64,000 bases of DNA from Mantamonas sphyraenae STR306 (taxonomy: Eukaryota > Protista > CRuMs), in assembly GCA_026936335.1 (NCBI GenBank), contig JAPMXV010000014.1:36708-100707 (forward strand). The letters run 5' to 3'. Shown piece after piece: positions 9,385 through 57,030 of the stretch. Within the stretch, counting starts at the first letter, position 1; every line of letters begins with the position of its first letter. The notes beneath the pieces are model-generated. The model did not search any database. It was given only the letters and a program-made list of their open reading frames with translations, and was not told where the DNA came from. Both the position numbers and the translations under genes were made by a program.

Positions 9385-12195
9385 ATGAGCACGGCCGATC
9401 CTGTCAGTGACGGGACCGGGTTTAACCTGGGCAGCGATGTGTTTGGGCTGGCGTGGATGTTCTGTGGCGAGGACCTGCAAACGTTTCTGGAGATGCAAAC
9501 GGAGTTTCTGGGCCAGCTGGAATTGGAGCAGGACACTGTGCAGGCAGACTTCCTGCCCATCCTGCTGGAGTGTCTGCAGAAGTTGACAGCAAGTTTGGCA
9601 CTGACCAACTTCCAACTGGGCACGAGCAAACGGGGCAGGAAGCAAGCGGTGCAGCAGCAGTCCGATTCGTGGACCCGCGGCGTAGCCGAACAGGTGGGAT
9701 CTGACCTACGCAAAAGTGTCATGCTGCACAACGCGTCGACGACATCCGGCCCCGGTGACGCAAATGGGAACCTTGCAAGCGAGAAGCTGGGCCGCACGCG
9801 GGCAGAGAGCATTCATTGGCTCAACAACGCGTTGTCCGATTTGGTGGCCAGCGGCGAACTGTCCACAGAGATGCCTGTGCGCCCTGTGGTGAGCATGGCA
9901 GACTTTGACGACGATCTGGAAGGTGTGGAGGAAACGGCAGAGGAGAGGGAGGAGAAGGATGCCGCGGACGGGGCTGAAGAAGGCGAGGAGAAGGATGAGG
10001 GCGAGGGCGACACGACGGCCTCCCGGGACGGTGGGACGAACCTGCGCCAAAACAGCCCCTACAAGGAACGGCCAGACGACGCAGAGTATGTACAGAAGCG
10101 CATGACCATGAAGAAGAACCCGCACAATGTGCCTACGATGCGCAGTCCGCTGACAAAGTTCAAGGTAAGTTTGTGGTTTTGCATCCGTTTGTGGACTCGC
10201 GCGCGTCGCGCAACCGCAGGAAAGGAAAGCAGGACAATTGGGATGCACCAAAGCGGGAGGACAGTGCTGACACAGGTGGGCACCGGGGTGTTGCACACAG
10301 TCAAAGGAAGTCAATATGCGCCTGTGGTGCGTGGAGACGTGGATCCACAAAGTTGCGTGGCGATGGGCCAGGGAGTGAACACGTCGGAGGTGCTTGTGGC
10401 CAACAAGCTGCTGCGATTCAACATTCAAGCAAAGGACAAGCAGGGGGTGCGGTTGCGCGAAGGGGGACATGCATTTCACGTGCAGATCACCCCGCTGGAA
10501 GACAAGGCGTTGTGGACACGCAACGACTTTGTGCCCAGCGAGATAGTGTCCCCACTGGACGAGGAGGACACCGGTGAGGATGTGCGCGTGAGTCATTGGA
10601 CGTCTGACGATGTGCACAACATCCATTGCTGGCTGGTGGACAGGAACACGGGCTCGTACAGGGTGATGTACTGTGTGTCGCAGATGGGACGGTACCAAGT
10701 GCACGTGAAGCTGGACGACCAGGATGTGCTGGGCTCTCCCTTTGAGGTGCGCATTGGTAGCGGCGAAGCAGCGCCAGAGAACGCAGAGATCCAGCCTTTG
10801 AGCACCAAGAACCTCTCCACGACAAATGTGGGCCACCTGACACGGCTGCTTGTGGTTGCACGTGATGGCATGGGCAACCGCATGGTCACGGGTGGGCTCA
10901 ATGTCAAGGGTGAGTTTAGTGGCCATGCACGATGCCACACGGAGGACCGGCAGGACGGAACGTACGAGGTGAGCTACACGCCGACAGCAGCAGGCGATTA
11001 CCGCCTCAAGCTGCGCATGGACAGTGTACACGTGGCAGGCAGTCCCTTCAAGGTGACGGTGTATGCAGGGCCGGCCGAGGCTGCCTTTTGCACAGCCACA
11101 GGGCCCGGGTTGACGATGGGCTCGGTCAAGTTGCGCACACGCAATCGATTCCAGATCCAGGCGAGGGACGTGTGCAACCAACGGACTTCGTTGATGCGAC
11201 ACAAGTTTGTGGTGGTGGTGAACCACGAGAATGTGGATACGGGCGAGGTGACGACGACGGAACTGGACAGCAAGAACGTGGTCAGCAAATCGGGAGGATT
11301 GATGGAAGTTAGTTGGACGCCACAATTGCCTGGCACATACAAGTTGAGCATCAAGTACGACGGCACACACATCTCGGGCTCCCCCTTTACCATTGTGCTG
11401 ATGGGTGTCACGGGGTATTACGGCATTCGGTCGGCCTCGTCGAACCGCATCGGCAGCACACGCGTGGCAAGCGTCATTGTCAGTCCCAAGAGCAAAGACA
11501 GTGGCAGCAGCAGCAGCAGCGGCGGCCGCGGCAGGGATGCAGATGGTGGACAGGGAAGCGGAGAAACACGGAAGCCCAGCGTGCTCAAGACACAGGCGCG
11601 GCAGGACAATCGCCACTCACTGCTGCGAAGCACAGCCAACGCATCGTTGAAATTGAAGAACGGCATCGAAACGAAGCGACATTCGCTGAGACCCGAAGAC
11701 TTTCTCAGTGTGACGGTCAATGGTCTCAGCGAAGACTTTGACGCCACAAAGCGGCTGTCGTTCGTGACCCAGGATCTTCTGGGACCACAGGGATCTCAGG
11801 CAGTGGAGGACGACGAGGATGACGACGAGGTCCAGCTGCAAACTCTCAACTTCATTGCCAAGAAACGCTCTGGTTTCCTGTCGCGTCGGGTGACGCGGTC
11901 GTTGGGCAAGCGCGAGTGGCGACAGTCGTTCTGGATGCTGACACGGACGACATTGTACAGCTTTGCTGGGGTGGATGACACGTTGCCACAGGCGCTGGTG
12001 TGCCTCGAACGCTGCAGCCTCAGCTACAAGGATGGCGACACGGAAAACTCCTTTGAATTGCATCTGGACAAAGGCAAAACCAAGATTCTGCTGCGTGCAG
12101 ACAAGCGCTCGGAGATGTTGGAGTGGGTGGAATGCATCCAGGAGCAGATTGACGCCCTGCGCTCGGAAGCCTTGCAAGAGCGGCTGGCCCAGTGA
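9385..12195 (+). CDS. Filamin Ig-repeat protein with C-terminal PH domain (in-frame 111-nt intron 10165-10275)
   Basis: Three filamin repeats (DRNTGSYRVMY..GSPFEV, DRQDGTYEVSYTP..GSPFKV, GLMEVSWTP..GSPFTI). PH domain KRSGFLSR..WRQSFWML..EMLEWVECIQ. Confidence 0.85.
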   Translation: MSTADPVSDGTGFNLGSDVFGLAWMFCGEDLQTFLEMQTEFLGQLELEQDTVQADFLPILLECLQKLTASLALTNFQLGTSKRGRKQAVQQQSDSWTRGVAEQVGSDLRKSVMLHNASTTSGPGDANGNLASEKLGRTRAESIHWLNNALSDLVASGELSTEMPVRPVVSMADFDDDLEGVEETAEEREEKDAADGAEEGEEKDEGEGDTTASRDGGTNLRQNSPYKERPDDAEYVQKRMTMKKNPHNVPTMRSPLTKFKVSLWFCIRLWTRARRATAGKESRTIGMHQSGRTVLTQVGTGVLHTVKGSQYAPVVRGDVDPQSCVAMGQGVNTSEVLVANKLLRFNIQAKDKQGVRLREGGHAFHVQITPLEDKALWTRNDFVPSEIVSPLDEEDTGEDVRVSHWTSDDVHNIHCWLVDRNTGSYRVMYCVSQMGRYQVHVKLDDQDVLGSPFEVRIGSGEAAPENAEIQPLSTKNLSTTNVGHLTRLLVVARDGMGNRMVTGGLNVKGEFSGHARCHTEDRQDGTYEVSYTPTAAGDYRLKLRMDSVHVAGSPFKVTVYAGPAEAAFCTATGPGLTMGSVKLRTRNRFQIQARDVCNQRTSLMRHKFVVVVNHENVDTGEVTTTELDSKNVVSKSGGLMEVSWTPQLPGTYKLSIKYDGTHISGSPFTIVLMGVTGYYGIRSASSNRIGSTRVASVIVSPKSKDSGSSSSSGGRGRDADGGQGSGETRKPSVLKTQARQDNRHSLLRSTANASLKLKNGIETKRHSLRPEDFLSVTVNGLSEDFDATKRLSFVTQDLLGPQGSQAVEDDEDDDEVQLQTLNFIAKKRSGFLSRRVTRSLGKREWRQSFWMLTRTTLYSFAGVDDTLPQALVCLERCSLSYKDGDTENSFELHLDKGKTKILLRADKRSEMLEWVECIQEQIDALRSEALQERLAQ

Positions 12196-12320
12196 GCCCA
12201 GCGAGAGCATGAAAGGCGGGCAGGCAATGAACACTCAAGAAAACAAAGCGCAGATGAGCACACATGCACACTTGTGGATTCCCATCATGTGGGCGCCATC
12301 GCAGCCACCCCGAGCAAAGA

Positions 12321-14020
12321 ATGTCCAGCCGAACAGCGACTGTGGTGGCATCTGTGCTCCTGGTGTGTCTGGCAGCGTGTGTGGTGTGTGACAACGTGGT
12401 CACCCTGACCGACGACAACTTTGACGATATGACCAAGGACGGCGCCTGGCTGGTGAAGTTGTACGTGTGCGCGATTCCGGCCGCCGCGCCCTCACGGCAA
12501 GAGGGGCAGACATCGGAATACATCCAACCCGTGCTGACACGTTTATGAACATGCTGCGCGTAAACACGTGCCATGTGTGCTGCGTGGATTGCCTCCGTTG
12601 GTGCCGTGTTGGGTCCACTTTGCGCTGACGTCAGCTACGCCCCGTGGTGTGGCCACTGCAAGCGCCTGGCTCCCATCTTTGAGGAGGCTGCAGGCAAGCT
12701 GGGTGGCAAAGTGCGCCTGGGCAAGGTCGATTGCACTGTGGAATCGGGTCTGGCCAGTCGCTTCAACGTCCGTGGCTACCCCACCGTCAACTTGTGCGTT
12801 GTTGGAAACATCCCATGCGACGGCGCCATACGCACCACGCCTCCCCAACCTCGCCCTGCCTGCAACACACAGCGCTGACACACGTTTTGGCATTAACAAC
12901 CGCCGTCGCCGTGTGCACCCTTCCACCACGCATCGATGGTCTCACAGTATCCGTGGCGAGTCTGTGAAGCAGTACACTGGCGGTCGCACAGTGGATGCCA
13001 TCACGCGTTACTGCGAGAGCATGGCTGGGTGGGTTTTCTCTGCTCCCCAGCACACGCCGATGAGGCAAATCACACACAGGCAACTGACACACATGCGCAC
13101 ACACGGTGCACCCTTTCATCCACAGCCCTGCTGCCTCGAGCATGGCCCTGAACGAGCTGGACGGCTGGCTGAAGAGCCCGAGCAACAAGTTTGTGCTGCT
13201 GAGCACGGACGAGGAAGACCAGCGCGTGTTTACTGGCGTGGCAGAGAACTACCAAGGCGGCAGTCTTGAATTTGCCATGGCCAAGGATAGCGCTGCCGGC
13301 TTTGCCAAGGCCCTGCAGGTGGAGGCAGGCACCAAGCTGGTGGCCGTCACCGACGAGGGCAACTTTGCCATGGACGACGAGTCGCTGGACAGCCAAAGCA
13401 TCGACAAGTTTGTGCGCACCTACCAATTCCCGCTGGTGAGCGAGATTGGCAGTGCCAACTTCCGCGAGTTGACCTCCCAGGGCGTGCTGACCATCATTGC
13501 CGTCGTCAACCCGGACGATGCCAAGAAGACACCTCCGTTCCTTGAGCTGACCCGTGAATTGGCCCGCAAGAACCGCGGTGGTCGTTTTGTGTTTGCCTGG
13601 ATCAACGGTGCCCAGTGGAGCGAGTATGTGGCTCGTTTCGACATCACCCCGGAGCTGTTCCCTCGCATGCTGGCCCTGGATGCGCCCGCAAACCGCTTCT
13701 TTGGCGACCTGGACATCAGTGAACAGACAGTGGCCGCGTACAGCACGTGGTTGGACACGGTGGAGCAGCAGAACGAGGATGCAAAGACCTTCTTTGGCAA
13801 CCTTCTGGACATGGGTGGCAAGGCTGTGCGTGCAGCCAAGAAGAACCTGCTGGCCACCGCGGGCTTCCTTGCCCTCTTTGTGGTTGCCATCTACCTCTGC
13901 TTCACCGCCCTCGACGAGGAGCCCCTGCCCGCCAGCAAGGCCGAGGCCAGCAAGAACGCAGCCGCCAAGGAAGCAGCTGCCACTGAGGAGAAGGGCACCG
14001 AGGCCAAGAAGGAGGACTAA
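12321..14020 (+). CDS. TMX3-like membrane protein disulfide isomerase (several introns)
   Basis: Signal peptide, [25 protein letters not shown], b/b'-like domains, a C-terminal TM segment and a KKED ER-retrieval tail. Confidence 0.9.
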
Positions 14021-17787: not shown

Positions 17788-20181
17788 TCAATCCATCCAT
17801 CCCTTGAGGATGCGCATCAGCTTGCGGAACAGCCTTCCCTCCTTGCTGGAGGAGTGACGGCGTCGGCGGCGCTTCTCCTTCTTCTCCTCCTTCTCCTCCT
17901 CCTCGTTGTGCTCACCTGCGCTGCTGGACGAAGGACCCTGCTGCGCTGCAGGCGTGGGCACGCTGCGCGGAGGCAGAGTGGGCTCGGGCATGGGCACGCT
18001 TGTGGGCTCGGGCTGCGCCTCGGTGGGCAGCTGCACAGAAGGAACAAGCGGAGACGTAAGCATGTTGCTGGCTCGGTGCAGGTCGTTGCACGGCACAGGC
18101 GTCTTGCGGATGTACGGGTACGTGCGCATGGGACGCGGAGACCCGCTCTTCACCGAGGGTCCGTTCACGGGCGAGCGCACAAGCGACTCGCTCGCCTTGA
18201 GCTCGCCATCGTAGTGAGCAAAGCCTGCCACGTTGACACTGCCCCACGACACCGCATCCACGGTCTCGCCTGTGGGCAGCTTCAACACCACAGAGTCGCC
18301 CGAGTTCTTCAGGCTCATCGAATGCTCCACATCGGCCGCCTCGCCGTTTGCCAGGGCTGCAAACTTCTGTTGGTTGCGTGCCACTGTGAAGAAGTTGCCT
18401 GCGCCCAGCACAGTGCCTGCCTCGATGGTCACCAGGTTGTCCGGTTCGCCAATCTGCCAACCGCTCACCACAAGGTCGAAGGGCATCGTGTTGATCACCT
18501 GCACAAACTCCTGGGTGGGTGTGTCGCCCGTCACGTACACCTCGTTGAACACCACCTTGGCCTTCTCCTGCAAAAAGTTGACGTACTTCTGAGCGCTGTG
18601 CACAAGCGTTCCGTCTCGCGACTCACCCTCCACCATCAGCTCCGTCACACCCTGACAGTAGCTGCGTGTGTCCACCGTCACGTAGTACAGCTCCTTGTTG
18701 CGCACCTTGCGCATGCGCAGCTTCTCGTACTGTGCCTCTGCCTCGTTCTCCTCGCCCGTCAGACCCACAAGCAGGTACACACGGTACGGGTCATCCACAG
18801 TCGCGTAGATGGTTGTGCGTCCGCTCAGCACCGCACCGCTCTTCAGGTCAAAGAAGCCTGCGCGTGACTCGCGCTCTGCAAACGGGTTGCCCAGCGACCA
18901 GTCCCGGTTGAACACCTGCTGCGTCCACCACGCGGCGATTTCCTTGTCGTCCATCATCACACCCATCTCTCGGTTGGCTGACGACGGTGTGGACGTCGAA
19001 GAAATCGACGACCCGGCCCAGTTGCCGCTGTACACAAACGTGTACTGGCCGTCCACCACCCAGAACTTGGCGTGCGTAAAGTACAGCGCGTTGGTCGTCT
19101 TGTACACGTCAATGCCCGCGTCAAACATACGCTGCGCCTGCTCGTTCGTGTTGGCGTTCTCCGGGTACGATGCACGGTTGTACGAGATCAACACACGGAT
19201 GTCAATGCCTGCCACACGCTTCTTCAGCGCAATCATCTCGTTCACCAGGGCCGTGTGGCTGATCGAGTAGATTTCCAGGTACACACTCTTCTTGGCGTTG
19301 CGGATGTACTTCAGGATCAGGTCCTCGCTGCTATCCGGGTTGGCAAACGCTGTCAGCTTGCGCTTTCCACGCCACGTCGGGAACGCCGACTTGGGCAGCT
19401 TGTCGTAGTCCGCCACACCCATGTTCATGTCCTCCACTTCGTAGTCCTGGCCCTCCTCCACATCGCTGTCGCCCATCTCCTCCTCGTGGCTCTCCTCCCC
19501 GTCGTCCTGCTCGCTTTCGCTGCTGCTTCCCTCCGCCGCGGCGTTTTCCAACGGCGCCGCTTCAGCCTGCTCTCCGTCCACTGCCATTGCGTCCTCCACG
19601 TTCTCCGCCTTGGTCGACGCTGCCTTCCAATCGTAGTCAAAGATGCGCTGGAAGTACGCGCCCACCTCGGTGTTTGTCACCATCATACCGGCCTCGCGGT
19701 TCGAGCGCAAGCTCTTTTCCGACCAATTCACCGACGAGAGGGCCGCCGTCTTGCCGTCAACAAGCACCAGCTTGTTGTGGTTCCACTTCAGCTGCTCCAT
19801 GTAGCGCACCTCCACCCCCTGGGTCTTGAGGAACTCGCCCACGCGGTCCTTGTCCGCTCCCTTGCGGCCTTCCAGAATCACCCGGACCCGCCTTCTTTTG
19901 GACGCCGCACTAATCAGCGCCTGCACCAGCGGGTGGTCCGCGTAAGTGGCCACGTCAAACTTGCGGATGTACTGCAACTCGACGTCCACCGTCGAGCGAG
20001 CACTCTTGATCAGATCCACCTGCTCATCCTCCGAGTTGTCCGGCGAAAGAAAGGGCTTCAGCACAGACGACGAGCTGCTGCTCACCGCCGCAAAGTTGCC
20101 CGAGTACCGCTGCGCAGCCGCACAGGCCACCAGCAGCACGAGTGCCACCAACACAGTCTGTCTGAGGTTGGTTGTTTGCAT
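17788..20181 (-). CDS. Secreted phospholipase D-family protein (two HKD motifs) with lamin-tail domain
   Basis: Signal peptide, HNKLVLVD and HAKFWVVD motifs with SSVNWS/SGNW and NRE. LTD motif VVFNEVYV..EFVQVIN..VSGWQI..LKNSGDSVVL. Intronless. Confidence 0.85.
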   Translation of the reverse strand: MQTTNLRQTVLVALVLLVACAAAQRYSGNFAAVSSSSSSVLKPFLSPDNSEDEQVDLIKSARSTVDVELQYIRKFDVATYADHPLVQALISAASKRRRVRVILEGRKGADKDRVGEFLKTQGVEVRYMEQLKWNHNKLVLVDGKTAALSSVNWSEKSLRSNREAGMMVTNTEVGAYFQRIFDYDWKAASTKAENVEDAMAVDGEQAEAAPLENAAAEGSSSESEQDDGEESHEEEMGDSDVEEGQDYEVEDMNMGVADYDKLPKSAFPTWRGKRKLTAFANPDSSEDLILKYIRNAKKSVYLEIYSISHTALVNEMIALKKRVAGIDIRVLISYNRASYPENANTNEQAQRMFDAGIDVYKTTNALYFTHAKFWVVDGQYTFVYSGNWAGSSISSTSTPSSANREMGVMMDDKEIAAWWTQQVFNRDWSLGNPFAERESRAGFFDLKSGAVLSGRTTIYATVDDPYRVYLLVGLTGEENEAEAQYEKLRMRKVRNKELYYVTVDTRSYCQGVTELMVEGESRDGTLVHSAQKYVNFLQEKAKVVFNEVYVTGDTPTQEFVQVINTMPFDLVVSGWQIGEPDNLVTIEAGTVLGAGNFFTVARNQQKFAALANGEAADVEHSMSLKNSGDSVVLKLPTGETVDAVSWGSVNVAGFAHYDGELKASESLVRSPVNGPSVKSGSPRPMRTYPYIRKTPVPCNDLHRASNMLTSPLVPSVQLPTEAQPEPTSVPMPEPTLPPRSVPTPAAQQGPSSSSAGEHNEEEEKEEKKEKRRRRRHSSSKEGRLFRKLMRILKGWMD

Positions 20182-43856: not shown

Positions 43857-45615
43857 ATGTCGCGCTCGTCGCTGTTTTCCAAAGCCACCAAGTGTGCCCC
43901 GCGCCACACCATGTTTGCCAACCAGGGCCTGTATGGCCTGGGGGCTCTCGAGGTGCAGACGCAGGAGGAGGTGCTTGCCGTGCACCAGCACCAGGTCCGC
44001 AACCTCGATGTCCATGAGTACCACTCCAAGCAGTTGCTCCGCAAGTATGGCGTCTCCTGCCAGCACGCAAAGGTCGGCTCCACCCCGGACGAGATCCTCG
44101 CCGGCGCCCGTGAGCTCGACGTGCCCGAATACGTCGTCAAGGCCCAAATCCTTGCTGGCGGCCGTGGCAAGGGCACCTTTTCCAACGGCTTCCAGGGCGG
44201 CGTCCACCTCTGCAACACGTAAGCTTGGGCCCTTTCGCTTCTTCCATGTTTGCCTCCCAGCTGGCGAGTGTGTGTTTTGCGCCTGCCGTCCCTCGGTTCT
44301 CTTCTCGCCTTGCTCACATTTCCAGCCTTCGCCCCCTTTTCTTCGCCTTCGAACAACAGCCCCGAAGAGGCCAGTGAGCTGGCTGCCAAGATGCTGGGCC
44401 AAACCCTGGTCACCAAGCAGACGGGCGAAGAGGGTACCCTTGTGCAAAAGGTTGGTTTGGGCCCTACTCGGCACGTATCCAGCGCCAAACGCAGCCCACG
44501 GGAGGGAAAACCCCATCTCGCTGACTCGTCTTTTCGCCACCCGGCCCCAACGGCGACCCCCACACACTCTGGCCTCACCGCACACTGCCACAGGTCATGG
44601 TCTCCGACTCGGTCAACATTGAGAAGGAGTACTACTTTGCTCTGCTGATGGACCGCACCCACCAGGGCCCCGTCATGGTCGCCAGCCCGGCCGGCGGCAT
44701 GGACATTGAAGCCGTCGCCGAAGAGACCCCGGAGAAGATCTTTACGGTACGTGAGGCACAGTGAGAGGACGAAACAAGGGAAAGAGAACGGGAACGGGGA
44801 CGGCGATGGGTGTAGGAGGAGGGGGGAGTGTGGGGGGGGTGGCCTGGCACAATGCTCACCCGAGACTCGGGGTACGTTTTCAACCACAGGATCCGATCGA
44901 CATCTTTGACGGGATGACGCAGGAGCAGGCCGACAGCATGGCAGCCAAGCTGGGCTTCCAGGGAGACCAGGCAGCACGTGCAGCTGAACAGATGCTGCGC
45001 CTGTACGACCTGTTTATTGGCACGGACGCCACGCAGGTGGAGATCAACCCGCTGGCTGAGCTGGACAACGGCGAGGTGATGTGCTGCGACGCCAAGATCA
45101 ACTTTGACGACAACGCAGCATTCCGTCAGGAGGAGATCTTTGCCATGCGCGACTTTAACGAGGAGGACCCGCGCGAGGTGGAGGCAGCCAAGAACGACCT
45201 GAACTATGTGGGTCTGGACGGCAACATCGGCTGCATGGTCAACGGCGCAGGCCTGGCCATGGCCACCATGGACATCATTCAGATGTACGGTGGCATGCCT
45301 GCCAACTTCCTGGACGTGGGAGGAGGAGCCACGGAGGGCCAGGTCACCGAGGCCTTTAAGATCCTCACCAACGACAAGCAGGTGCAGGGCATCCTCGTCA
45401 ACATCTTTGGCGGCATTGTCAAGTGCGACGTCATTGCCGAGGGCATCGTGGCCGCCGCCAAGACCGTGAACCTCAGCGTGCCCCTCACCGTGCGTCTGGA
45501 GGGCACCAACGTGGAGAAGGGCAAGGCCATCCTTGAGAGCTCGGGACTGCCCATCATCACTGCCGACAACCTCGACGAGGCTGCACGCAAGAGCGTGGAG
45601 AGCATTGGCCTGTGA
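43857..45615 (+). CDS. Mitochondrial succinyl-CoA ligase beta subunit (SUCLA2/SUCLG2 family), 4 exons
   Basis: Transit peptide, [65 protein letters not shown] and RLEGTN. Confidence 0.96.
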
Positions 45616-45664
45616 TGATGTGTTGTGGCGTTCAGCGCGCTGTGGTCAGCAACGCAAAACAAAA

Positions 45665-46684
45665 ATGACCTTCAAAACGAATGCAACGGGTGGGTCATAC
45701 ATCCACGGCAAAGCCTTTTCGGCGGACAAACGAGAATGCATTCTCTTTCACTACCAATCCAGCTTGCGTCCTTCGTGCAGAGGCACAGCGGAGGCTCTCG
45801 GTGTGTCTCCTTCCGTCGTGTCCAAGATTGTACGTCAACACCGAGCCATGGGCCATGTACGCCCTCTTGTGGCCCAACCACCGTCCAGGCGTCTCCTGGA
45901 TGCCAATGACGACCAGTTCATTGCTGAACAGGTGGCCGATGATCCGCGACTGTACCTGGACGAGTTGCAAGTAGCCGTTGCTCTTCATCGCAACAAGGTG
46001 GTATCTCTGTCCACAATTCGCCGTTCTTGTGCGCGCATGGGACTGACTCGCAAGAAGGTGAGTGCTATCGCCAAGCAACGGTTCAGGGAATCCACCGTGG
46101 CGCGCACACGCGAGTTTACTCGAGCAATGAGGATTCGCGGTGTGTTCCGAGCGCCGAACGTGGTCTTCTTGGACGAAACTGCAGTGAACAACAGAGTGTG
46201 CTACAGGAGATATGGTCGTGCGAAACGTGGGCAACCAGCGGTCGTTGTGGAGAACCATCCCAAGCAAAAGCGCATCAGCGTGCTGGCGGCCATCAGCACC
46301 GGTGGGCGCTCGCCACTGGTAGCGTACACAATGCGAGAGGGGTCATACAACCGGCAGCTGTTTATGGAGTTCCTGGAGCAAGACCTCTTGCCCCGCATGC
46401 GAGATTGCCGCCAAACAGTTCTGGTCATGGACAACTGCTCCATCCACAAAGGCGATGCTGTACGCCAGCTGTGCACCTGGTATGGGGTGGATGTCGAGTT
46501 TCTCCCGCCTTACACACCTACGCTCAACCCCATCGAGCTCATGTTTAGCAAGTTCAAGGCGGTCCTCCGCAGGGAATTTCATCGAGTGGACATTTGCACA
46601 TTCGCGGCGATTTGTACTGCATTGGGGCATGTTACGGCTGCTGATGTGAGGAACTGGGTCCATCACTGCGGGTACCGCATGTAG
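45665..46684 (+). CDS. IS630/Tc1-mariner DD34E transposase, 339 aa, intact, with paired-like HTH
   Basis: VVFLDET, LVMDNCSIHK and FLPPYTPTLNPIELMFSKFK, with 34 residues between the second D and E. N-terminal HTH plus the LYLDELQ..VSLSTIRR..GLTRKK winged-HTH-like segment. Confidence 0.93.
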   Translation: MTFKTNATGGSYIHGKAFSADKRECILFHYQSSLRPSCRGTAEALGVSPSVVSKIVRQHRAMGHVRPLVAQPPSRRLLDANDDQFIAEQVADDPRLYLDELQVAVALHRNKVVSLSTIRRSCARMGLTRKKVSAIAKQRFRESTVARTREFTRAMRIRGVFRAPNVVFLDETAVNNRVCYRRYGRAKRGQPAVVVENHPKQKRISVLAAISTGGRSPLVAYTMREGSYNRQLFMEFLEQDLLPRMRDCRQTVLVMDNCSIHKGDAVRQLCTWYGVDVEFLPPYTPTLNPIELMFSKFKAVLRREFHRVDICTFAAICTALGHVTAADVRNWVHHCGYRM

Positions 46685-48001
46685 GATCGTGGAGCGTAGC
46701 CATTCAGGGCGCACGCTGGTGCTGAAAAACCCGTACTCCCAATGCCATCTTTGTGTCGGGGGGGCTCAAAGAGAAGCAGGGAGGGCTAAGTGGGGCACCT
46801 ACAAGGCGTGGATAGTGCCCACCTCCCCTGGCAGCAGTCACCCGAGTCAGGAGCGACGGCCTTGCAACCGGGCTTTGCGAACATACCATGCGCCCCGTGC
46901 ATAAACAATCCATGGAACGCCTGCATACAGTCATCATGCCACATGGTCCTCTGGTTTTGGCTCCAACACCCGTGGGAGGAGCAGCATGCAGGTTGACGCC
47001 GTTGAGATGCACCCCTTGACACCCAGTACAATTATTGTGCACATGCGTCTCCCCTCAGCAGACCCATGTCCCAATATGTATCTACAAACACCATGAGACA
47101 GCCTGTGAAGCCCGATACCGTGGATTCACAACCTGATTTTCACGTAGCCTGACAAGGCGGTTCTTTGTGTCGTCGAGGACGGCCAAGGCCCCACGGCAAG
47201 GGGCGCTTCCTGCTGTAGTGTCTTGGTGTAGTCGCACAGCCTTTCCACTTGACTCTGTTTGGTTCCTGTGGACGTGTGCCACTTGCTGGTCACGCGACGG
47301 CAACGAAGCATCACCCTTTTGCCCGTGCGGTGCCCAGCGCTGCGTCTGCCGGTTTGGTGGGCAATCGGGCGTCGTACAGGGAGCATACTGCAAACGGGGA
47401 CAGCACATCACACCCACATTTGCATGTAGAGGCGACGACGCAGCGCGACGACGCGGCAACTTCTAGCCACTCATCAATTTTTCTTGGCGTTGTGGCCATG
47501 CCTCCTACCTTTCAACCCCTCCTCGGTGATCTATCTCCTGCTGGATTGAGTTTGCCAGGTACAAAACAGCCGAGACTCTATTGTGACGTGCAACGCCTGC
47601 GAAAGCAGCACCTATCCTTCCTCGCCCTCCTGGTCGTCCAGGTCCAGGCTCTGTTCCCTCTGTTCCTCAACATCGTTACATGGGCCACTGTGCTCCTCAG
47701 TGAGTGTGAACTGCAGGATTTCAACCCTCTGTGCCGGCAAACGGCCAACGTGCGTTTCGATGTTCTCGTCGGCAACGGCGTGCGCGGGGCCCTTCCAGAG
47801 CAGCAAGTGATGTGGGTAGGGCTGTGGAGGATGGGGCTTGTGAACTGTGTGCAAGTGCTCGGGGGCGTCGGAGAGGGCAACAAGCTTTCTGCGGCATTTG
47901 ACAGCGAGGCGCGAGGCTTGACGTTTGACAACTGACCTGCTCTGAAAAAGCGGCGGCTGGCCCAAGTGCGCGGGTGGAGTCAATAGTTTCAAGAGTGTAG
48001 A

Positions 48002-51000
48002 ATGTCGATTCTGAAGTGTCAGCACCATAGCTGCAACAACGAGACAGTGCTCATGGTGTGCTGGGTAACGTCAGCCCGATCTCACGTGTCGCTGGTGTGT
48101 CCGACCTGTGTGGCCGACAACGAGTCGATTTCCCTGTACACACCACGAACAAGACTACCTGCAAATCTGGGCGAGCCCGAAGGTGACATGCAAGGGTACG
48201 CCAACGTCAACGGTGTCAACCCCGCGAAGGTGGCATGCTGGGTGTCGTCCTATGCCACAGCCGTGCGCGCCTCTCCAACTCTGCGAACGTCCATGTGCAA
48301 GTACCTTCTCGGATGGCTGGAGGCAACGACAGGCGGGAACGACCCGACCCAGTTGGGGCCTGAGCCTGGGGAGCAAGGTAAGCTCAAACCGCACTCAATC
48401 CCGCTGACAGGAGAGTGGAGATTGCTCACCCGCCCTCTTTGCGCCGGCACACACAGACCCCAGCGTCGTCAACACGGCCCTTCTGCGGCAGACCTGGTGC
48501 ATGGCCATGTTCTGTGACGACGACATGTATGCCGTGGCCTGCAACGATCTCTTCCTTGCCGCTACAGTGCTGGCAGGCGGCGACGACCTGTGGGGTGACT
48601 CGGCAGATTTCCATCACCGCCTCGAGGTCGCATTCGACTCTGACTTCCCCATCCAGATGTTGCATGGTGGTACCCCCCCGCCAGCGGACGCCGCAGGGGT
48701 TGCAATGCTTGCGGGGCGAGGTGCTCTCCAGCAACGTGAGGGCGAGGGCCTGCCGGAGCAAGAGCAGGAAGTGCCCTTCGGGGTGCTCTGTTTCCAAGGG
48801 GAGCACTACACGGCATGGCTTCCACTGGCGGAAGGGAAATTCCGTGTGTACAATGACCTTGTGCCGCAGCTGACTGACGAGGAGTGGCCCGCGCCTGAGC
48901 GTGCGCCCACGGGTTTCAGGCTGGTCTTCCTCAAGTCTCAACCGGAAGAGGAGTGGCGGTTGCCGTCTGCCATGGGCACCGTGGCTCTCGACAACAAATC
49001 AAACGTGTTCCGCAAGCCCATGGCCATCAGGGGCCCGCGAGTTGTGATGCAGAGCAAGGAGAGCTCCACCTCAGCTGCTGGAAGGCGTTTGTACGCGCAC
49101 GCTGCACGGGCTCGAGGGACAACGCCAGCGCCTCAAGGACGGCCACCTTCGACCCGGGTGCAGGTTGCTGGGTCAACCGCATCTGTGCGTGGGCTCCGTT
49201 TCAACCGTGTGCCCGCCACGCAGACATCGGCAGCAGGGCAGCTGAAACAGCTTCCGACTTCAGCCGGCGACAAGACGCCAGTGACCGCAAAGTGTCTGGA
49301 CGTGTTGAACGACAACTGGCAACCCCCACCTTTGGCTGACTCTGCTGTCAACGAGGGCGTGGAGGGTGGTGTGCAGCGTGGCGTCGCTGGGTCGGGGGGA
49401 ACCCGCCTTGCCGCAGTGTACGTTGGCCTCAGCAGCCTCGCCGCTCGCTACTTGCACCTCTCCGACCATACCATCACGCATCCCGCCACGTTCACCTCTG
49501 CCTGGCAATGGGTCACCACGATCCTCGACACTGTGTTGCCCAGATTGAGCAAGCTGTTCTCGACTCGCACGGTTGTGGTTGTGGACGACGTCGTGTCCAC
49601 AGCCGCACTGTTTGCAGGTCGAGCCACGCCAGCCGAGCTGCAACGCTTCTACCAGCAACTGAGTGCAGCTGCGTCCCAGGACACCTTCTCCAACGCCAAG
49701 CAGCGAGCGTTCGCCGCTCGTGCCACTGTCACCACCCTGGCGCCAGTGATGCGCGACTACCTTGCTGCCCATCAAGTGGCAACGATGTCACTGGACGAGT
49801 TCGTCACAAACCAGGCCGTCAGAAATAAGGCCGTCAGAAACCAGGCCGCCAAAAACCAGGTCAAGGCCGAGGACGATATCGTTCTGTGCCACCGCGAGGG
49901 GCGTCTCATGGCTGGCCTCGCACTCCATGGGTCAGCTCCGGGGCTGCGGGTTGTCAACATCTTCAACGCCCATGTGGTGGACACGAAGAAAGTGCACGCC
50001 CAAGCGACGTCATGGAAACTGATAACCTGGGCCAAGGGAGTCAAGAAGAAGCCCAAAAAGGGGAAGACGACAAAGACCAAATCGCGAGGGAAAACATCGA
50101 TCAAGAGTGACGACGAAAAGAAGGAAGAAGAGACTAAAGCGCTGAGGCAGCAGCTGCTCACGGTGGGTCTGGAGGAGACCGAACGTGACCATGGTCCCAT
50201 GTCGGCCGTCGCCCTGGCGCAAGCAGTCTGCCAGCGGCTTGGAGGAGTGCATGGTCTCGATCATCAACGCGCGCAGACCGTGATGGAGTCGTTCAGCAGA
50301 CTGTGTACGCAGGCCAAGCCGAAACCGCGCTCAGTGGAGGAGTTGGCACAGGCCATGGGCTTGACCGAGGTCAACATCACCTACAACCACAAGCCAGAGC
50401 TGAAGAACACCGATGACACCCGTATGCATATGGAGTACAAGCTCGGGCGTGGCCACAGTGCACGGGAAGGGACGCTGCACGTGCAGGAGATGCCATTCCA
50501 TCTCGCACAGGGCATTCACAAGGATGTTGCGAAGGCCATGGTGGGCCAGGAGGACGCCACGGAGCCGGACGAGGAGGACTGTGCGGTGCCCTACCTGCTG
50601 ACGGCAACTGAAGCCGAAATCGAGCAGCTTGTGGAGGAGATTCCTGCTGGCTTTGATGCATCTGTCTTCAAAAAGAACAAGGAGGAGTCACTCGGTTCCC
50701 GTGAGGCCGTTAAAAGGTGGACATCTGTTCCACATGTGATCACAGCACGGCACGAGAAACAACTGGCAGTGCTCCTGCGGAAGGATGGCCAAGTGCTTCG
50801 CCCTCCTGCGACCCCATCATCAGCGACCCGTGCGGACCTATTCGAGGTGGCGCTCCAGACAGGGGCAACAACAGAGGGCGAGACATTGACGCCGCTCAAG
50901 GATGCTTTTTATGACAAGGATGACGTGAAGGGAAGCCAGCGGGGGCGACCCGTGTGGATCCCGCACGGTTTTGATTTCGCCACGCTGCTGCCTTCGGCCA

Positions 51001-54000
51001 CGGCGATCAGGGAGCACGATTTTGTTGAGTACCAGAGCGATCTCAAGAAGAATCTGAAGCTGGAGGCGAACGTGCGTGGGCTTGGAAAGAGCGAGGCTGA
51101 CGTTCTTGGAGCGTTGGCGGACTGTATGCTCGTGCAAACAGCCTTGCTTCGAGCATGGTTCGTCGACCAGGTGATTCCAGAGGTGAAAAAGGACCCAACT
51201 GCATGGTTCACTGCGCCCCATGGACGCCAGCAATCGGTGGATGGCAGCGACGAGCAGGAGGAGGGGGAGCTGGATGAGGCGGAGCTGGATGAGTCGGAGC
51301 TGGATGAGGCGGAGCTGGATGAGGCGGAGCTGGATGAGGCGGAGCTGCCAACAGAGGATCAGACGATGATTGACGGGATGGTGGTCGACGGGATGGTGGA
51401 AGTTCACAGCCGCGTGAAGCCCTTCTACCTGCTCGAAGCGTCCACGGCTCTGCGCACAGTGGCGACGCACAACCTCAAGGTACTCAAGGAGAACGTGGAC
51501 ACCCCAGAGGAGCTCAAGTCTGTACGATTTACCAGGAACGGGATACAGAAGGCGGGCGATGGTCAACATGGTTTCGACTTTTCCTTCATGGTCACGCGTC
51601 TGAAGGTGGATCTTTCGGAGGCGCCCGTGTCGAGCATGGCCAATGACATCGCTCGTGCCTTCAATGGCAGCCTGCAGTCGGCCATCTCCTTGTGTGCCTA
51701 CCCGATGATCGTGGCGCTGATGAGGAACGGGGCGCCCAGCGAGCTGCCCATGTCCGCCATCGTGGCCAGCGTCGCCGCGCTCATGCGTACAAGCTATGCA
51801 AAGACCAAGAAGGCGTTCCAAACCCACCAGGTGTCGACAAAGGACACACGTGACTTTGTGTTCTCTCAGCCCATCCACAAGGCCACAAAGGCTGCTGCCG
51901 CGGCTGCTGCTCACTCTTCAGTGGAGGTCCAGGGGCCCTCCATGGATGTGCAGGAGTCCTCCATGGATGTGCTGCCCTCTGTGGATGTGGAGTCATCCAT
52001 GGATGTGCAGGGGTCCTCCGTGGATGTGCTGCCCTTTGTGGATGTGGAGTCATCCATGGATGTGCAGTCCTCCGTGGATGTGCTGCCCTCTGTGGATGTG
52101 GAGTCATCCATGGATGTGCAGGAGTCCTCCGTGGATGTGCTGCCCTCTGTGGATGTGGAGTCATCCATGGATGTGCAGGAGTCCTCCGTGGATGTGCTGC
52201 CCTCTGTGGATGTGGAGTCATCCATGGATGTGCAGGAGTCCTCCGTGGATGTGCTGCCCTCTGTGGATGTGGAGTCATCCATGGATGTGCGGTCCTCCGT
52301 GGATGTGCTGCCCTTTGTGGATGTGGAGTCATCCATGGATGTGCAGGAGTCCTCCGTGGATGTGCTGCCCTCTGTGGATGTGGAGTCATCCATGGATGTG
52401 CAGGAGTCCTCCGTGGATGTGCTGCCCTCTGTGGATGTGGAGTCATCCATGGATGTGCAGGAGTCCTCCGTGGATGCGCAGCTCTCTGTGGATGCGCAGC
52501 GCTCACAAGGTGTACCTCCATGGGACCCGTACGAGGAGGTGTGCGCAAGTCTCTCGGATCAACTCGGCAAGCACGTGCGTGGCAAACGGGACGCGTTGTC
52601 TGTGCTGTTGGATGTGATGCTCAAGCCCGACCTGAAGACCAATCTCAAAAGCACACAAGCAAAGCGCGCCATTGCATCGACAGCAGCATCATTGGACTGT
52701 GTTGACGCGATGTTTCCCGGTCCGGTTGACATTGGCGGCCAGTTCGTCTTCGGCGCGTACTCCGTCAAGACGTACGCGTTTAAGATCTTTGTGAACACCA
52801 TGGAAGCAAGGTGGAAAGCCCATGGAAAGCCGAACGGGAATGCCAACCCAGATGACCCCCAAGACGCCAACCCGGACGCCAACCCGGACGCCAACCCGGA
52901 CGCCAACCCGGACGCCAACCCGGACGCCAACCCGGACGCCAACCCGGACGCCAACCCAAACGACCCCCCAGACGCAAACCCGAACGCCAAGTCGGACGCC
53001 AATCCGGGTTGGTGGAATGCACTGAAAGAACGCGAGTGGGTTTTGACGGATGAGGCCATCCCGAGTCTCCCTAAATGGCTCAAGCAGGCAGTGTATCGGT
53101 GTCGGTATGCTCGTCGCATGCCAGAAAACAACAGTGACGAGGATCTGCCCAACAAGCACTGGGCAGGGAAACGGCCGCTGCGAACAGTTCCCGTGAAGTC
53201 AATACTCATGCTCACGCGCGGCGTTGGCACGAAAAACGCAAGGTGCCTGCTGAAGAACGTCAGCGCCAGCAGCATGCGCATGCTCTCTGGTGGAATCGCC
53301 GCTCAGGGGAAGTACAGACGAGCGTTTGTGTTACAGCCACCAAGAGTTCACACTCTCCTGCCTTCACCGGCGAGCCTCGCAACATTGATCAGGCCAAGGA
53401 TGGCTCATCTCCTGCCCCTTCTGCTGGACCCCAAGAAGAACGCGCTGATTGCCCTGGCCGTGCTGAAGCCCACGGGCATGCCAGACACGTTGACGACCGA
53501 GATCCAGAAGATTGCTCCCGGTTTCCCGAAGTACCCCGTTCCGAAGCGTGGCTTGGTCGAGCAGGTCAAGGCCTTTGCCAAGAATGGATACGCAGTCCTT
53601 GAGCATGCACGCAAGGTGCTGTGGATCAGCATTGACCCTGGTCGTGGACGCGACTGGGTCGAGGCGATCTTTGTGCGGGACGGCCAGCTGTATGTGGCCA
53701 CCTTGCCCCTGGACAGCCACGATGTGCAGGCACACAAGGCAGGGCAGGACCGAGTGCTGGCGTCGTACACGGACTTCAAGGAGGAGTACAAGCAACGTGT
53801 CTTCGGAAAAGATTTGCACAAGGATGCGAAGCACATGCGTGCGCAGTACGCAACGTTTCGCAAACGAAGGATGGCAGGCGTGCGTGAGATGATCTCCGTG
53901 ATCCACAAGTTCCGCGCGCATCTGGGCCTGGAGCAGGTGATTGTGCTGCAGCCGACAAAGACGTTTGGCGGACGCGGGAAATCGCAGGAGATGCGGGAGA

Positions 54001-54503
54001 TGCTGGCCAACCACTTTGTCGTCATTGCAGCAGACGAGAGGTATACATCGCAGCAGTGCTTCTGTGGCAGCGCTGTCGACAACTTGGACGACTTTGGCGC
54101 TGAGAAGTTTGGGCGATGGCGGACGTGCAGCAGCCACTGCCTGTCGGACATCGACTCCAACATGTTTGACGCCACCAAGCAGCTCAAACGCTTTGCACAA
54201 CGGCACGCATGCAAAGAGATGGAGGGCGAGGGTGAGCACAACTTGCACCAGGCAGTTCAGAGAGACCGAGGCTCTGCACACTGCATCTTCTGGCGGCAGA
54301 TGCTCTTCTTTGTCACAGGCGTCTGGATGGAGAAGCCAACAAAGAAAATCAAGGTGCAACGCAAGGCAGCAGACAAGGCAGGCGAGAGAAGCAAGAAGAG
54401 AAGAGATGAGGAAGTGGGGGAAGAAGAGGATTCGGGTGGGTCACAACCACAACAGCATGCAACCAAGCGACAAAGGGTACCAAGCGACGAAGGAGGCAAA
54501 TGA
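48002..54503 (+). CDS. Giant Fanzor (TnpB-like RuvC nuclease) fusion protein, ~2140 aa; exons 48002-48377 and 48457-54503
   Basis: RuvC-I WISIDPG (D at 53634), shifted RuvC-II ADERYTSQQCFC (E at 54036), Cys cluster CFC...CSSHC and RuvC-III QRDRGSAHCI (D at 54264). A 79-nt GTAAG...CTCAC...CACAG intron joins the upstream ORF in frame. Confidence 0.85.
51267..51347 (+). repeat. 15-bp coding repeat x5 (ELDEA)
   Basis: GAGCTGGATGAGGCG tandem array. Confidence 0.95.
51938..52500 (+). repeat. 57-bp coding minisatellite, ~9-10 copies (SVDVLPSVDVESSMDVQES)
   Basis: Near-identical tandem units built from (A/G)TGGATGTG submotifs. Two units lack one codon, so the frame is preserved. Confidence 0.95.
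52863..52958 (+). repeat. 12-bp coding repeat x8 (DANP)
   Basis: GACGCCAACCCG tandem array. Confidence 0.95.
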
Positions 54504-54630
54504 TCGGCCTACAGATCCAAATCCACAGGCTTACCCATACTACCTTGTCGCACCATGTGGTGCATCGACTAGCCGAAGGCCATGTGCACAGCCATGTGGC
54601 CAATACAATGATGAACGAACGATCCCATTC
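54504..54630 (+). ncRNA. Candidate omega-RNA (Fanzor scaffold plus flank-derived guide)
   Basis: Lies between the Fanzor stop and the putative right end. Hairpins GTC-GCACC-ATGT-GGTGC-ATC-GAC (54547-54569) and GGCCATGTG-CACAGC-CATGTGGCC (54578-54601). Inferred by analogy to TnpB/Fanzor loci. Confidence 0.45.
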
Positions 54631-54712
54631 CCATTCCTTCTCATCGCAAACAATCCATGCATTGCACTCGTGCGCCCTCCGCAACACCCAAACCCAAACC
54701 ACACACACAAGC

Positions 54713-57030
54713 ATGACTGAGCTTGACGACACTTCTGACCTTGTCGATTACGAGGAGGACGATCTGGAGACCACTGAGGAGGCTACCACCACAAAGTATG
54801 TTTCAACCAGCACGTGAGCCAGCCTCGCGGCCGGCTCTGGCTCTCTTCTCTTCTTCTTCTTCTTCTTCCGGCTTGCTTGGGATCCAACCACCGCGCCCAC
54901 TGTTTTTCTCTCAGGGGGGAGCACATTCGCAAGCGAACACATACGCGGGGGCTCACTGTTGTGGAGTTGCTTGGCGTGTAGCGCTGGTTTTTTGTGTCTC
55001 CCGCCAATTTGGCGCCAGCCACATTTTCTTCCCTCTCGCGGGGGTTGAAGCCACGCCTCGCACTCCACGCGCTGCCCCCGCTCGCGCGCACATCGTCTCC
55101 ATCTGGGATGCCTGCGCATGCAAGGCGCACCCCACCCACCTGCCTCCTGTGCTGCATACCGGCTGCGATTCGCACACCAAAGTGCGCCAGACGTCGCCGG
55201 AGAAAAAAATGCAACGCAGGAGTGACGGCCGAGGTGGAATGTGCGCCTTTTCGCCTCGTCTGCTCGCATCCCAGTGGACACCAGTACCAGGCCACCGCAA
55301 GGCGGCCCAGCGATCAAAATTCAGAGGAGCCAAGGAATTCACGATGCGTCCCTCCCCTTTGTCCACGCGCGTGGTGTGCGCAAGAAAAAGAGGCGCCAGA
55401 TGCTGGGATTTCCATGTCTGGCTCGATGCGCCCAAAACGCAGAAACACGCTCGTGGCGGAGGAGGGACGAGGTTCAGGCCACGCGTATCCTAGTATCCGA
55501 TGACAAACGCATGTGCGGCCCCGGCTGCAAGGAACAGATTGGACGGTTATGTCGCGAAAAGAGGCAAAACCAATCCTGGGCGAGAGGCCATCTCTCTCTG
55601 CCCGCTGCCCGGTGTCGCACTCGCACACTTGCACACTTGCACACTTGCACGCACGCACACACATACACACACACACACACACTCCATGCCACGATTTTTG
55701 CCCAGTTGTCGTCTCTCTCGTACAAAAAACCACTTGTCTCTCACACTCAAGCTCGCGGCCTCGCAACAACAACAACAACAACAACAACAACAACCTTGGA
55801 TATTTATCCAACCATCCAAACTGTTACAGGGTGGCCACCGACAGCTCCACGTACTCGAGCTCCTTCAAGGACTTTCTGCTGAAGCCCGAGCTGCTGCGCT
55901 CGGTGGTGGACCAGGGCTTTGAGCACCCGTCCAAGGTGCAGCACGAGGCCATCCCGCAGGCCATCCTGGGTGGTGACATCCTGTGCCAGGCCAAGTCGGG
56001 CATGGGCAAGACGGCCGTGTTTGTGCTGACCACGCTGCACCAGCTGGAAACGGACGACAACAACGTGCAGGTCGTCGTCATGGCCCACACGCGCGAGCTG
56101 GCCTTCCAGATCGCTCACGAGTACGAGCGCTTCACCAAGTACATGCCCGAGGCCAAGGTGGCTGTGTTCTACGGCGGCATCCCGGTCAAGCAGCACAAGG
56201 ACATCCTCAAGGACGACCCGCCCCACATCCTGGTCGGCACCCCGGGCCGCATCAAGGGCCTGCTCAAGGACGGCAGCCTCGACCTGAAGAACGTCAAGCA
56301 CTTTGTGCTGGATGAGTGCGATTCCCTGCTGGACTCTCTGGACATGCGCGCCGACGTCCAGTACATCTACCAGCAGACGCCGCCCATGAAGCAGACCATG
56401 ATGTTCACCGCCACCCTGCCCCAGGAGGTCAAGAGCATCTGCCGCCTCTTCCTCAACAACCCCATGGAGATCCTCGTCGACGACGACAGCAAGCTCACCC
56501 TGCACGGTCTCCAGCAGTACTACATCAAGCTCACCGAGGAGGAAAAGACCCAGAAGCTCACCGATCTGCTCGACGCCCTCGAGTTCAACCAGGTGGTCAT
56601 CTTTGTGCGCAGCGTCAACCGCGCCAAGGCCCTCAACAGCCTGCTGCGCGAGTGCAACTTCCCGTCCATCTGCATCCACTCGGGTCTCAAGCAGCCCGAG
56701 CGCATTTCCCGCTACAACCAGTTCAAGAACTTTGATGCCCGCATCATGGTTGCCACGGACATCTTTGGCCGCGGTATCGACATTGAGCGCGTCAACATCG
56801 TCATCAACTACGACATGCCCGTCGCCGAGGAGAGCAAGGAGGGCCGTGGCGCCGATGCCTACCTGCACCGCGTCGGCCGTGCTGGCCGCTTCGGCACCAA
56901 GGGTCTTGCCCTCTCCATGGTGTCCTCTGCCGAGGACTCGGAGGTCCTCAACGCCGTCCAGGAGCGCTTCGAGATCAACATCGAGAGCATCCCGGATACC
57001 ATCGACGTGTCCACCTACATGAACGCCTAA
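54713..57030 (+). CDS. DDX39: DECD-box RNA helicase UAP56/SUB2 (exons 54713-54795 and 55830-57030)
   Basis: [46 protein letters not shown] and [12 protein letters not shown]. Confidence 0.97.

Follow-up and report, generated by a model that had tools for sequence, protein, structure and literature searches.

Fanzors are eukaryotic RNA-guided DNA-cutting proteins, derived from TnpB and related to CRISPR-Cas12. They have a mean length of 620 amino acids (PMC10530073) and a published signature that combines a DPG motif with a shifted glutamate (10.1101/2023.08.09.552727); their role in hosts is still open (PMC10432273). The Fanzor1 proteins of Tc1/mariner elements, such as PGv-1, PUl-1, ROr-1 and SpuFz1 (PMC3627910, PMC10432273), have a DPG in RuvC-I, a non-acidic residue at the canonical RuvC-II site, a glutamate seven residues before the first zinc cysteine, a short lid and an RD helix, and come with an adjoining DDE transposase and a short 3′ spacer. 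The protein described here is like them in all of these respects, but is about three times longer and only 15–21% identical to them in the RuvC region, with an atypical zinc finger, unrecognizable REC/WED domains, a protease-like domain at the N terminus and no terminal inverted repeat (TIR) or TA duplication found. Closer in size are the giant, intron-rich Fanzor1 proteins known from slime moulds and from Mucorales (PPa-4, 1827 amino acids; PPa-7, 1756; PPa-1, 1699; MCi-2, 1375; PMC3627910, supplement 1). Ubiquitin and SUMO proteases also have precedents on transposon proteins: OTU or Ulp1 in Ginger1, Ulp1 in Mutator, OTU in Helitron and a transposase–peptidase C19 combination in Trichomonas (PMC2836005).

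The window, by which we mean the whole 64-kb stretch of DNA that was analysed, is gene-dense, intron-poor sequence of a unicellular eukaryotic host, has ~59% GC and also encodes filamin, MCM2, Sec10, SKIP, SARAF, ankyrin and TPR proteins, and DDX39/UAP56. Only one Fanzor and one transposase were identified within it, and their genes share one gap flanked by housekeeping genes. This gap runs from 45615, the end of a gene that we take to encode succinyl-CoA ligase beta, to the start of DDX39 at 54714, and holds the transposase, a 1.3-kb spacer and the Fanzor gene:

45665–46684, + strand: intact Tc1/IS630 transposase of 339 amino acids with D170-D256-E291 (DD34E) and an N-terminal HTH (Pfam DDE_3, E 7e-27; NCBIfam NF033545, 128.5 bits, above the cut-off)
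46685–48001, no strand assigned: spacer of 1.3 kb, largely non-coding apart from a patch of coding-like signal around 47640–47880; no family match
48002–48377, + strand: exon 1, 125 codons plus 1 nt, coding by the codon model, with an N-terminal Cys/His cluster and a candidate USP-type Cys79 at 48236–48238; no profile match
48378–48456, + strand: GT-AG spliceosomal intron of 79 nt, phase 1, which splits the protease-like domain
48457–54503, + strand: exon 2, open for ~2014 codons, GC3 ~0.70 (host genes, 0.72–0.92)
50043–50066, + strand: lysine-rich internal stretch in the sequence, NLS-like in its presumed function
51939–52494, + strand: tandem repeat of 57 nt in ~10 copies, an acidic Ser/Val/Asp linker
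49802–49860, 51252–51347 and 52863–53007, + strand: other in-frame repeat arrays
54393–54476, + strand: basic tail (KKRR, KRQR), putatively a nuclear localization signal
54504–54713, + strand: spacer of 210 nt up to the DDX39/UAP56 start, with two hairpins at 54546–54601 as a positional omega-RNA candidate

The original prediction, made from the letters of this stretch, had proposed a spliced gene for a protein of ~2140 amino acids with D1852, E1986 and D2062 as its RuvC triad, and the gene structure bears this out. The intron has a GTAAGC donor, a branch-like CTCAC and a CAG acceptor, and its removal puts the ATG at 48002 in frame to give 2140 amino acids with this triad. The host codon model gives exon 1 a coding score of 0.02 in its own frame, against about −0.55 for the remaining frames, and reads the intron as non-coding in both frames (−0.49/−0.55); together, the splice signals and codon scores disfavour a frameshift in place of the intron. 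An alternative in-frame acceptor at 48420 might conceivably be used. In the 48501–54503 open reading frame (ORF), every motif quoted in that prediction was found at its place (WISIDPG at residue 1708, VIVLQP at 1813, ADERYTSQQCFC at 1844, RTCSSHC at 1874, QRDRGSAHCI at 1920, KKRR at 1965 and KRQR at 1989). For searches and folding, the spliced protein was analysed exon by exon.

The claim that the protein is unusually large was overstated. Fanzor1 proteins of 1000–1827 amino acids, from genes with many introns, have been published (PMC3627910, supplement 1), and ~285 residues of the present protein are contributed by four tandem arrays with periods of 15, 15, 57 and 12 nt, without which it would measure ~1855 residues. 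The protein is at the top of the known Fanzor1 size range, not beyond it. It resembles the giant slime-mould and Mucorales proteins in size class, the presence of introns, a long and variable N terminus and a degenerate zinc finger, but it has a single intron and is ~300 amino acids longer, approximately its tandem-repeat length; the giant proteins are carried by Sola2, MuDR or Crypton elements whose ends are defined, and the literature consulted mentions no protease domain in them. All array periods are divisible by three, suggesting that selection has kept the frame open, and frame-preserving repeats combined with host-like codons imply selection on the ORF.

Two further regions of the protein caught our attention. 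A Cys/His cluster in exon 1 (48017–48109, + strand) may be a zinc finger and weakly matches UPF0167 (E 0.067). The segment at 49389–50015 (+ strand; ORF residues ~297–505) resembles, on visual inspection, a degenerate alpha/beta domain of the PIN/FEN or PRTase kind, and a profile test of it was not significant; a FEN/PIN-like domain at ORF residues 290–510 was matched by 25 of 1000 shuffles after the region had been picked and is therefore unsupported.

The case for a Fanzor is carried by the C terminus, in which four elements lie in order:

53622–53642, + strand: RuvC-I, DPG motif with D1852 (53634); rank 1 of 1991 with Fanzor1 and Fanzor2-like matrices, aligned to the Fanzor1 DPG
53937–54065, + strand: RuvC-II strand with proline at the canonical glutamate site, a short lid and Fanzor1-type helix, the shifted E1986 (54036), TS and the first zinc ligands
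54057–54140, + strand: atypical TNB zinc finger, C1993-x-C1995 ... C2016-xxx-C2020 (Pfam Cas12f1-like_TNB, E 3.6e-4, below the cut-off)
54258–54287, + strand: RuvC-III, R-D2062 (54264) followed by a predicted helix; rank 3 (Fanzor1) and rank 1 (Fanzor2-like) of 1987, both conserved asparagines replaced

With matrices from giant-virus Fanzor1 proteins, RuvC-I, the helix before the glutamate, the E motif and RuvC-III ranked 1, 1, 2 and 3 of ~1990 positions and were colinear, a constellation of motifs that is beyond chance. P1958 occupies the canonical RuvC-II glutamate site, and E1986 is followed by six residues and then a cysteine. The pre-glutamate helix fits Fanzor1 only (rank 1, versus 700–1150 with Fanzor2-like and rearranged-TnpB sets), and the distance from the RuvC-II strand to the shifted glutamate is 28–29 residues (33–35 in Fanzor1); together, these two features make the protein Fanzor1-like. 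The aspartate lies 136 residues from TS and the last cysteine 40 residues from RD, as in the motif D-X(125,275)-[TS][TS]-XX-C4 finger-X(5,50)-RD once cysteine spacing is relaxed, and the glutamate lies 76 residues from RD (Fanzor1 median, 51). The Pfam TNB score, although below the cut-off, exceeded that of a true Fanzor1 control, and the invariant Fanzor1 arginine aligns three residues before the third zinc cysteine. The original prediction of a Fanzor-type RuvC with a shifted glutamate was thus sustained by the DPG, the colinear block ranks and the TNB match, and was narrowed to Fanzor1. Its zinc finger and RDxxAAxNI-like RuvC-III fared less evenly: four cysteines and the RD are at the site, but the cysteines are spaced CxC...CxxxC, departing from the strict published Fanzor1 CxxC spacing (as do some accepted Fanzor1 proteins), and the two RuvC-III asparagines, invariant in 34 Fanzor1 proteins, are both replaced.

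These ranks depend on reference sets that were built because direct searches with the query were blank. No homologue was detected among 1.84 billion representatives (word search and full phmmer) or in viral and metagenome contigs, and there was no match among PDB sequences, phages, plasmids, NCBIfam, PHROGs or PADLOC. Giant-virus seeds fetched by a generic motif pattern gave 120 homologues, and this family is true Fanzor1, matching PpFz1, SpuFz1 and GtFz1 at E 5e-41 to 1e-19. As only the E motif was used in fetching references, the ranks of RuvC-I, the pre-glutamate helix and RuvC-III are independent. By contrast, the pattern that retrieved the TnpB and Fanzor2-like sets had been modelled on the query; E-motif scores against these sets are therefore circular and carried no weight in the assignment. 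The C terminus beat 2000 of 2000 shuffles on the viral Fanzor1 profile, weakly (6.1 bits), with the signal mapping to ORF residues 1827–1877; profile scores were low overall (6–14 bits). The original prediction had proposed AlphaFold with Foldseek as a check. The single-sequence model of the C terminus has three strands, long helices, a strand, a helix, a strand and a helix, which is the RuvC order, but at low confidence (pLDDT 35; 39 for the other model), and Foldseek returned nothing significant, the top three matches of the C-terminal model including Cas005 (8iew), a small protein of the Cas12 type, and a phage RuvC at E ~0.2. The RuvC is very probably that of a Fanzor. Computationally, it resolves as a predicted, highly diverged Fanzor1-type RuvC with all three acidic residues kept, an assignment based on motif blocks, spacing and alignment.

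The N-terminal part of the protein carries a candidate ubiquitin-pathway domain, which, like the adjacent Tc1/IS630 transposase, was absent from the original prediction:

48771–48935, + strand: USP/peptidase-C19-type His box with H242 (48804) and N258/D259 (48852–48857), on predicted consecutive beta strands

We used a profile of viral USPs, a reference set confirmed as USP against PDB. It scored the first 170 amino acids of exon 2 above 2000 of 2000 shuffles of that piece, and the whole of exon 2 above 1993 of 2000; hhalign matched the His box to USP at E 0.002. Among 3778 fetched ORFs, 3% of which are USPs, 12 of the top 20 matches were USPs (0–1 for 25 shuffles and 11 other sequence segments), an enrichment that is not a probability given that these USPs are mutually related. 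The pre-His strand, His and N-D blocks occur in order, the W/F-x-x-x-N-D strand is present downstream of the His box, and the predicted strands of the exon-2 half fit USP; Foldseek was uninformative. In exon 1, Cys79 is the best Cys-box position (p ~0.5, not significant) and a QQD-like site came second in its scan, also not significant; Pfam UCH was not matched. Cys79 and H242 are 163 residues apart, leaving no room for a full fingers subdomain. Judged by eye from the published description of USP53 and USP54 rather than from their sequences (PMC12037411), the query is like them in having an elongated Asn-containing loop before the cysteine and in having lost the usual residues before the catalytic histidine, but unlike them in its short Cys-to-His distance. 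From these comparisons, the USP-type domain is probably real; that it is enzymatically active is a more doubtful prediction.

The protein shares with the transposon proteins described in PMC2836005 the fusion of a ubiquitin-system cysteine-protease module to a transposon protein, but the partner there is a transposase and here an RNA-guided nuclease, and the present domain is only partly supported. Our literature search returned no report of a Fanzor–protease fusion. What is new at the locus is a very divergent Fanzor1 variant with a probable protease fusion; giant spliced Fanzors were already known.

On balance, we lean towards a nuclear, omega-RNA-guided Fanzor1 nuclease, N-terminally expanded and associated with a Tc1/IS630 DD34E transposase, which would promote its element by cutting empty donor sites and would carry an accessory ubiquitin-pathway protease. 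By analogy with known Fanzors, the protein would enter the nucleus and bind an omega-RNA encoded in the 210-nt spacer that follows its gene, with the final ~15 bases of this RNA serving as the guide. It would then cut where a TAM adjoins a guide match, for example in an empty donor allele, and homologous repair would restore or spread the element. More tentatively, the domain with C79, H242 and N258-D259 might be a cysteine protease that removes ubiquitin or SUMO, like the domains known from Ginger, Mutator and Helitron proteins; it might stabilize the protein or tune repair at the break; the tandem repeats would act as flexible linkers. A more ambitious version, in which an active deubiquitinase or deSUMOylase fused to the RNA-guided Fanzor1 removes ubiquitin at a guide-chosen nuclear DNA site, either steering repair of its own cut or acting as a domesticated programmable chromatin modifier, appears unlikely. 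If true, a fused ubiquitin-pathway protease would link Fanzor cutting to the control of DNA repair, a role proposed for Ulp1 and OTU on transposases. At its size, the protein is not an obvious candidate for an editing tool, and its lack of a detectable homologue among so many representatives indicates that Fanzor diversity is undersampled.

The main competing explanation, to which we give considerably less credence, is a domesticated single-copy Fanzor1 that has kept RNA-guided DNA binding or cutting for the host, for example to deliver a deubiquitinase to chosen chromatin or to target viruses or transposons, with the transposase as an unrelated neighbour. No inverted repeat above chance was found, nor a TA in 45560–45665 at the left junction, a target-site duplication or a second element copy within the window. 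Only 49 nt separate the transposase start from the stop codon of the preceding host gene, and they contain neither a TA nor a TIR. Host-like GC3, the intron, the NLS-like tails and extreme divergence in an intact ORF point the same way, and some Fanzors are known without ends and transposases (PMC10432273). Moreover, the transposase has its best homologues in fungi (30–36%), lies outside the viral Fanzor-linked clade, and has no Fanzor beside it at four loci of its relatives. Against domestication, an intact transposase, the only one identified in the window, ends 1.3 kb upstream of the only Fanzor and shares a gap between housekeeping genes with it, and sequence searches found no orthologue in any other genome. 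Fanzor1 also often travels with IS630-type transposases, which were present beside 11 of the 26 viral Fanzor1 loci retrieved, some of them redundant. Linkage between the transposase and the Fanzor is thus likely but unproven and, as the ends are undetectable, this copy has probably lost the ability to move in cis.

An improbable alternative is a Fanzor1 relic that has lost its nuclease: the triad would survive amid a degenerate zinc finger, RuvC-III and REC/WED, the ORF would have been lengthened by repeats, and the USP-like motif would be a coincidence or a non-functional leftover. The CxC/CxxxC spacing, the two lost asparagines and the unmatched Cys box fit such decay, as does the absence of a REC/WED signal, no viral Fanzor1 profile block outside RuvC-II/TNB having scored above shuffles. 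So does the RNA: by analogy, an omega-RNA is expected within the 210 nt downstream of the Fanzor stop codon, and the two hairpins there have z scores of −1.4 to −1.8, which are not significant (sixth percentile of the window), with no Rfam match and no viral right-end match in the spacer. Against decay stand the 6-kb ORF without stops, its four repeat arrays, all in frame, and the retention of all three acidic residues and four cysteines; the zinc fingers of published giant slime-mould Fanzor1 proteins are likewise degenerate. That the protein is no Fanzor, but an unrelated RNase-H-fold or low-complexity host protein with short motifs by chance, is very improbable: there was no significant database or structure match and the E-motif scores of the TnpB sets are circular, yet RuvC-I, the pre-glutamate helix and RuvC-III, outside any selecting pattern, rank 1, 1 and 3 in order, and the Pfam TNB match is independent.

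Several minor observations concern the surroundings of the gene. Metagenome matches to an 18-nt hairpin pattern were due to chance. In the upstream spacer, 27 codons at 46703–46783 (+ strand) are similar to the RuvC-II region of the large ORF (11 of 27 identical), a likeness reached by 0 of 100 sequences in one control and ~2% in another and not significant as DNA, and 46871–46941 aligns weakly, not significantly, with the hairpins proposed as omega-RNA. At the DNA level, there was no support for reading 46700–46950 as a decayed second Fanzor or as the ghost of an element end. Two antiparallel overlapping ORFs, 47498–47935 (+, 145 amino acids) and 47612–48028 (−, 138 amino acids), have no family match, and the coding-like codon signal at 47640–47880 falls inside this pair. 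They could be a small gene or an extra upstream exon, and an AG stands just ahead of the ATG at 48002.

In giant viruses, Fanzor1 genes at at least six loci are divergent to adjacent IS630-type transposases, and those loci have a conserved right end of ~100 nt ending in GGTGTAA, clearly an omega-RNA/TIR family. Next to the closest fungal Tc1 transposases (two loci, 11463–13406 and 11419–13275) lies a convergent unannotated gene of 540–560 amino acids, unrelated to the window. Elsewhere in the window, a single ORF at 17788–20181 (− strand) encodes a phospholipase D-like protein with a lamin-tail domain. This architecture is common among bacteria, and horizontal transfer of the gene is possible.
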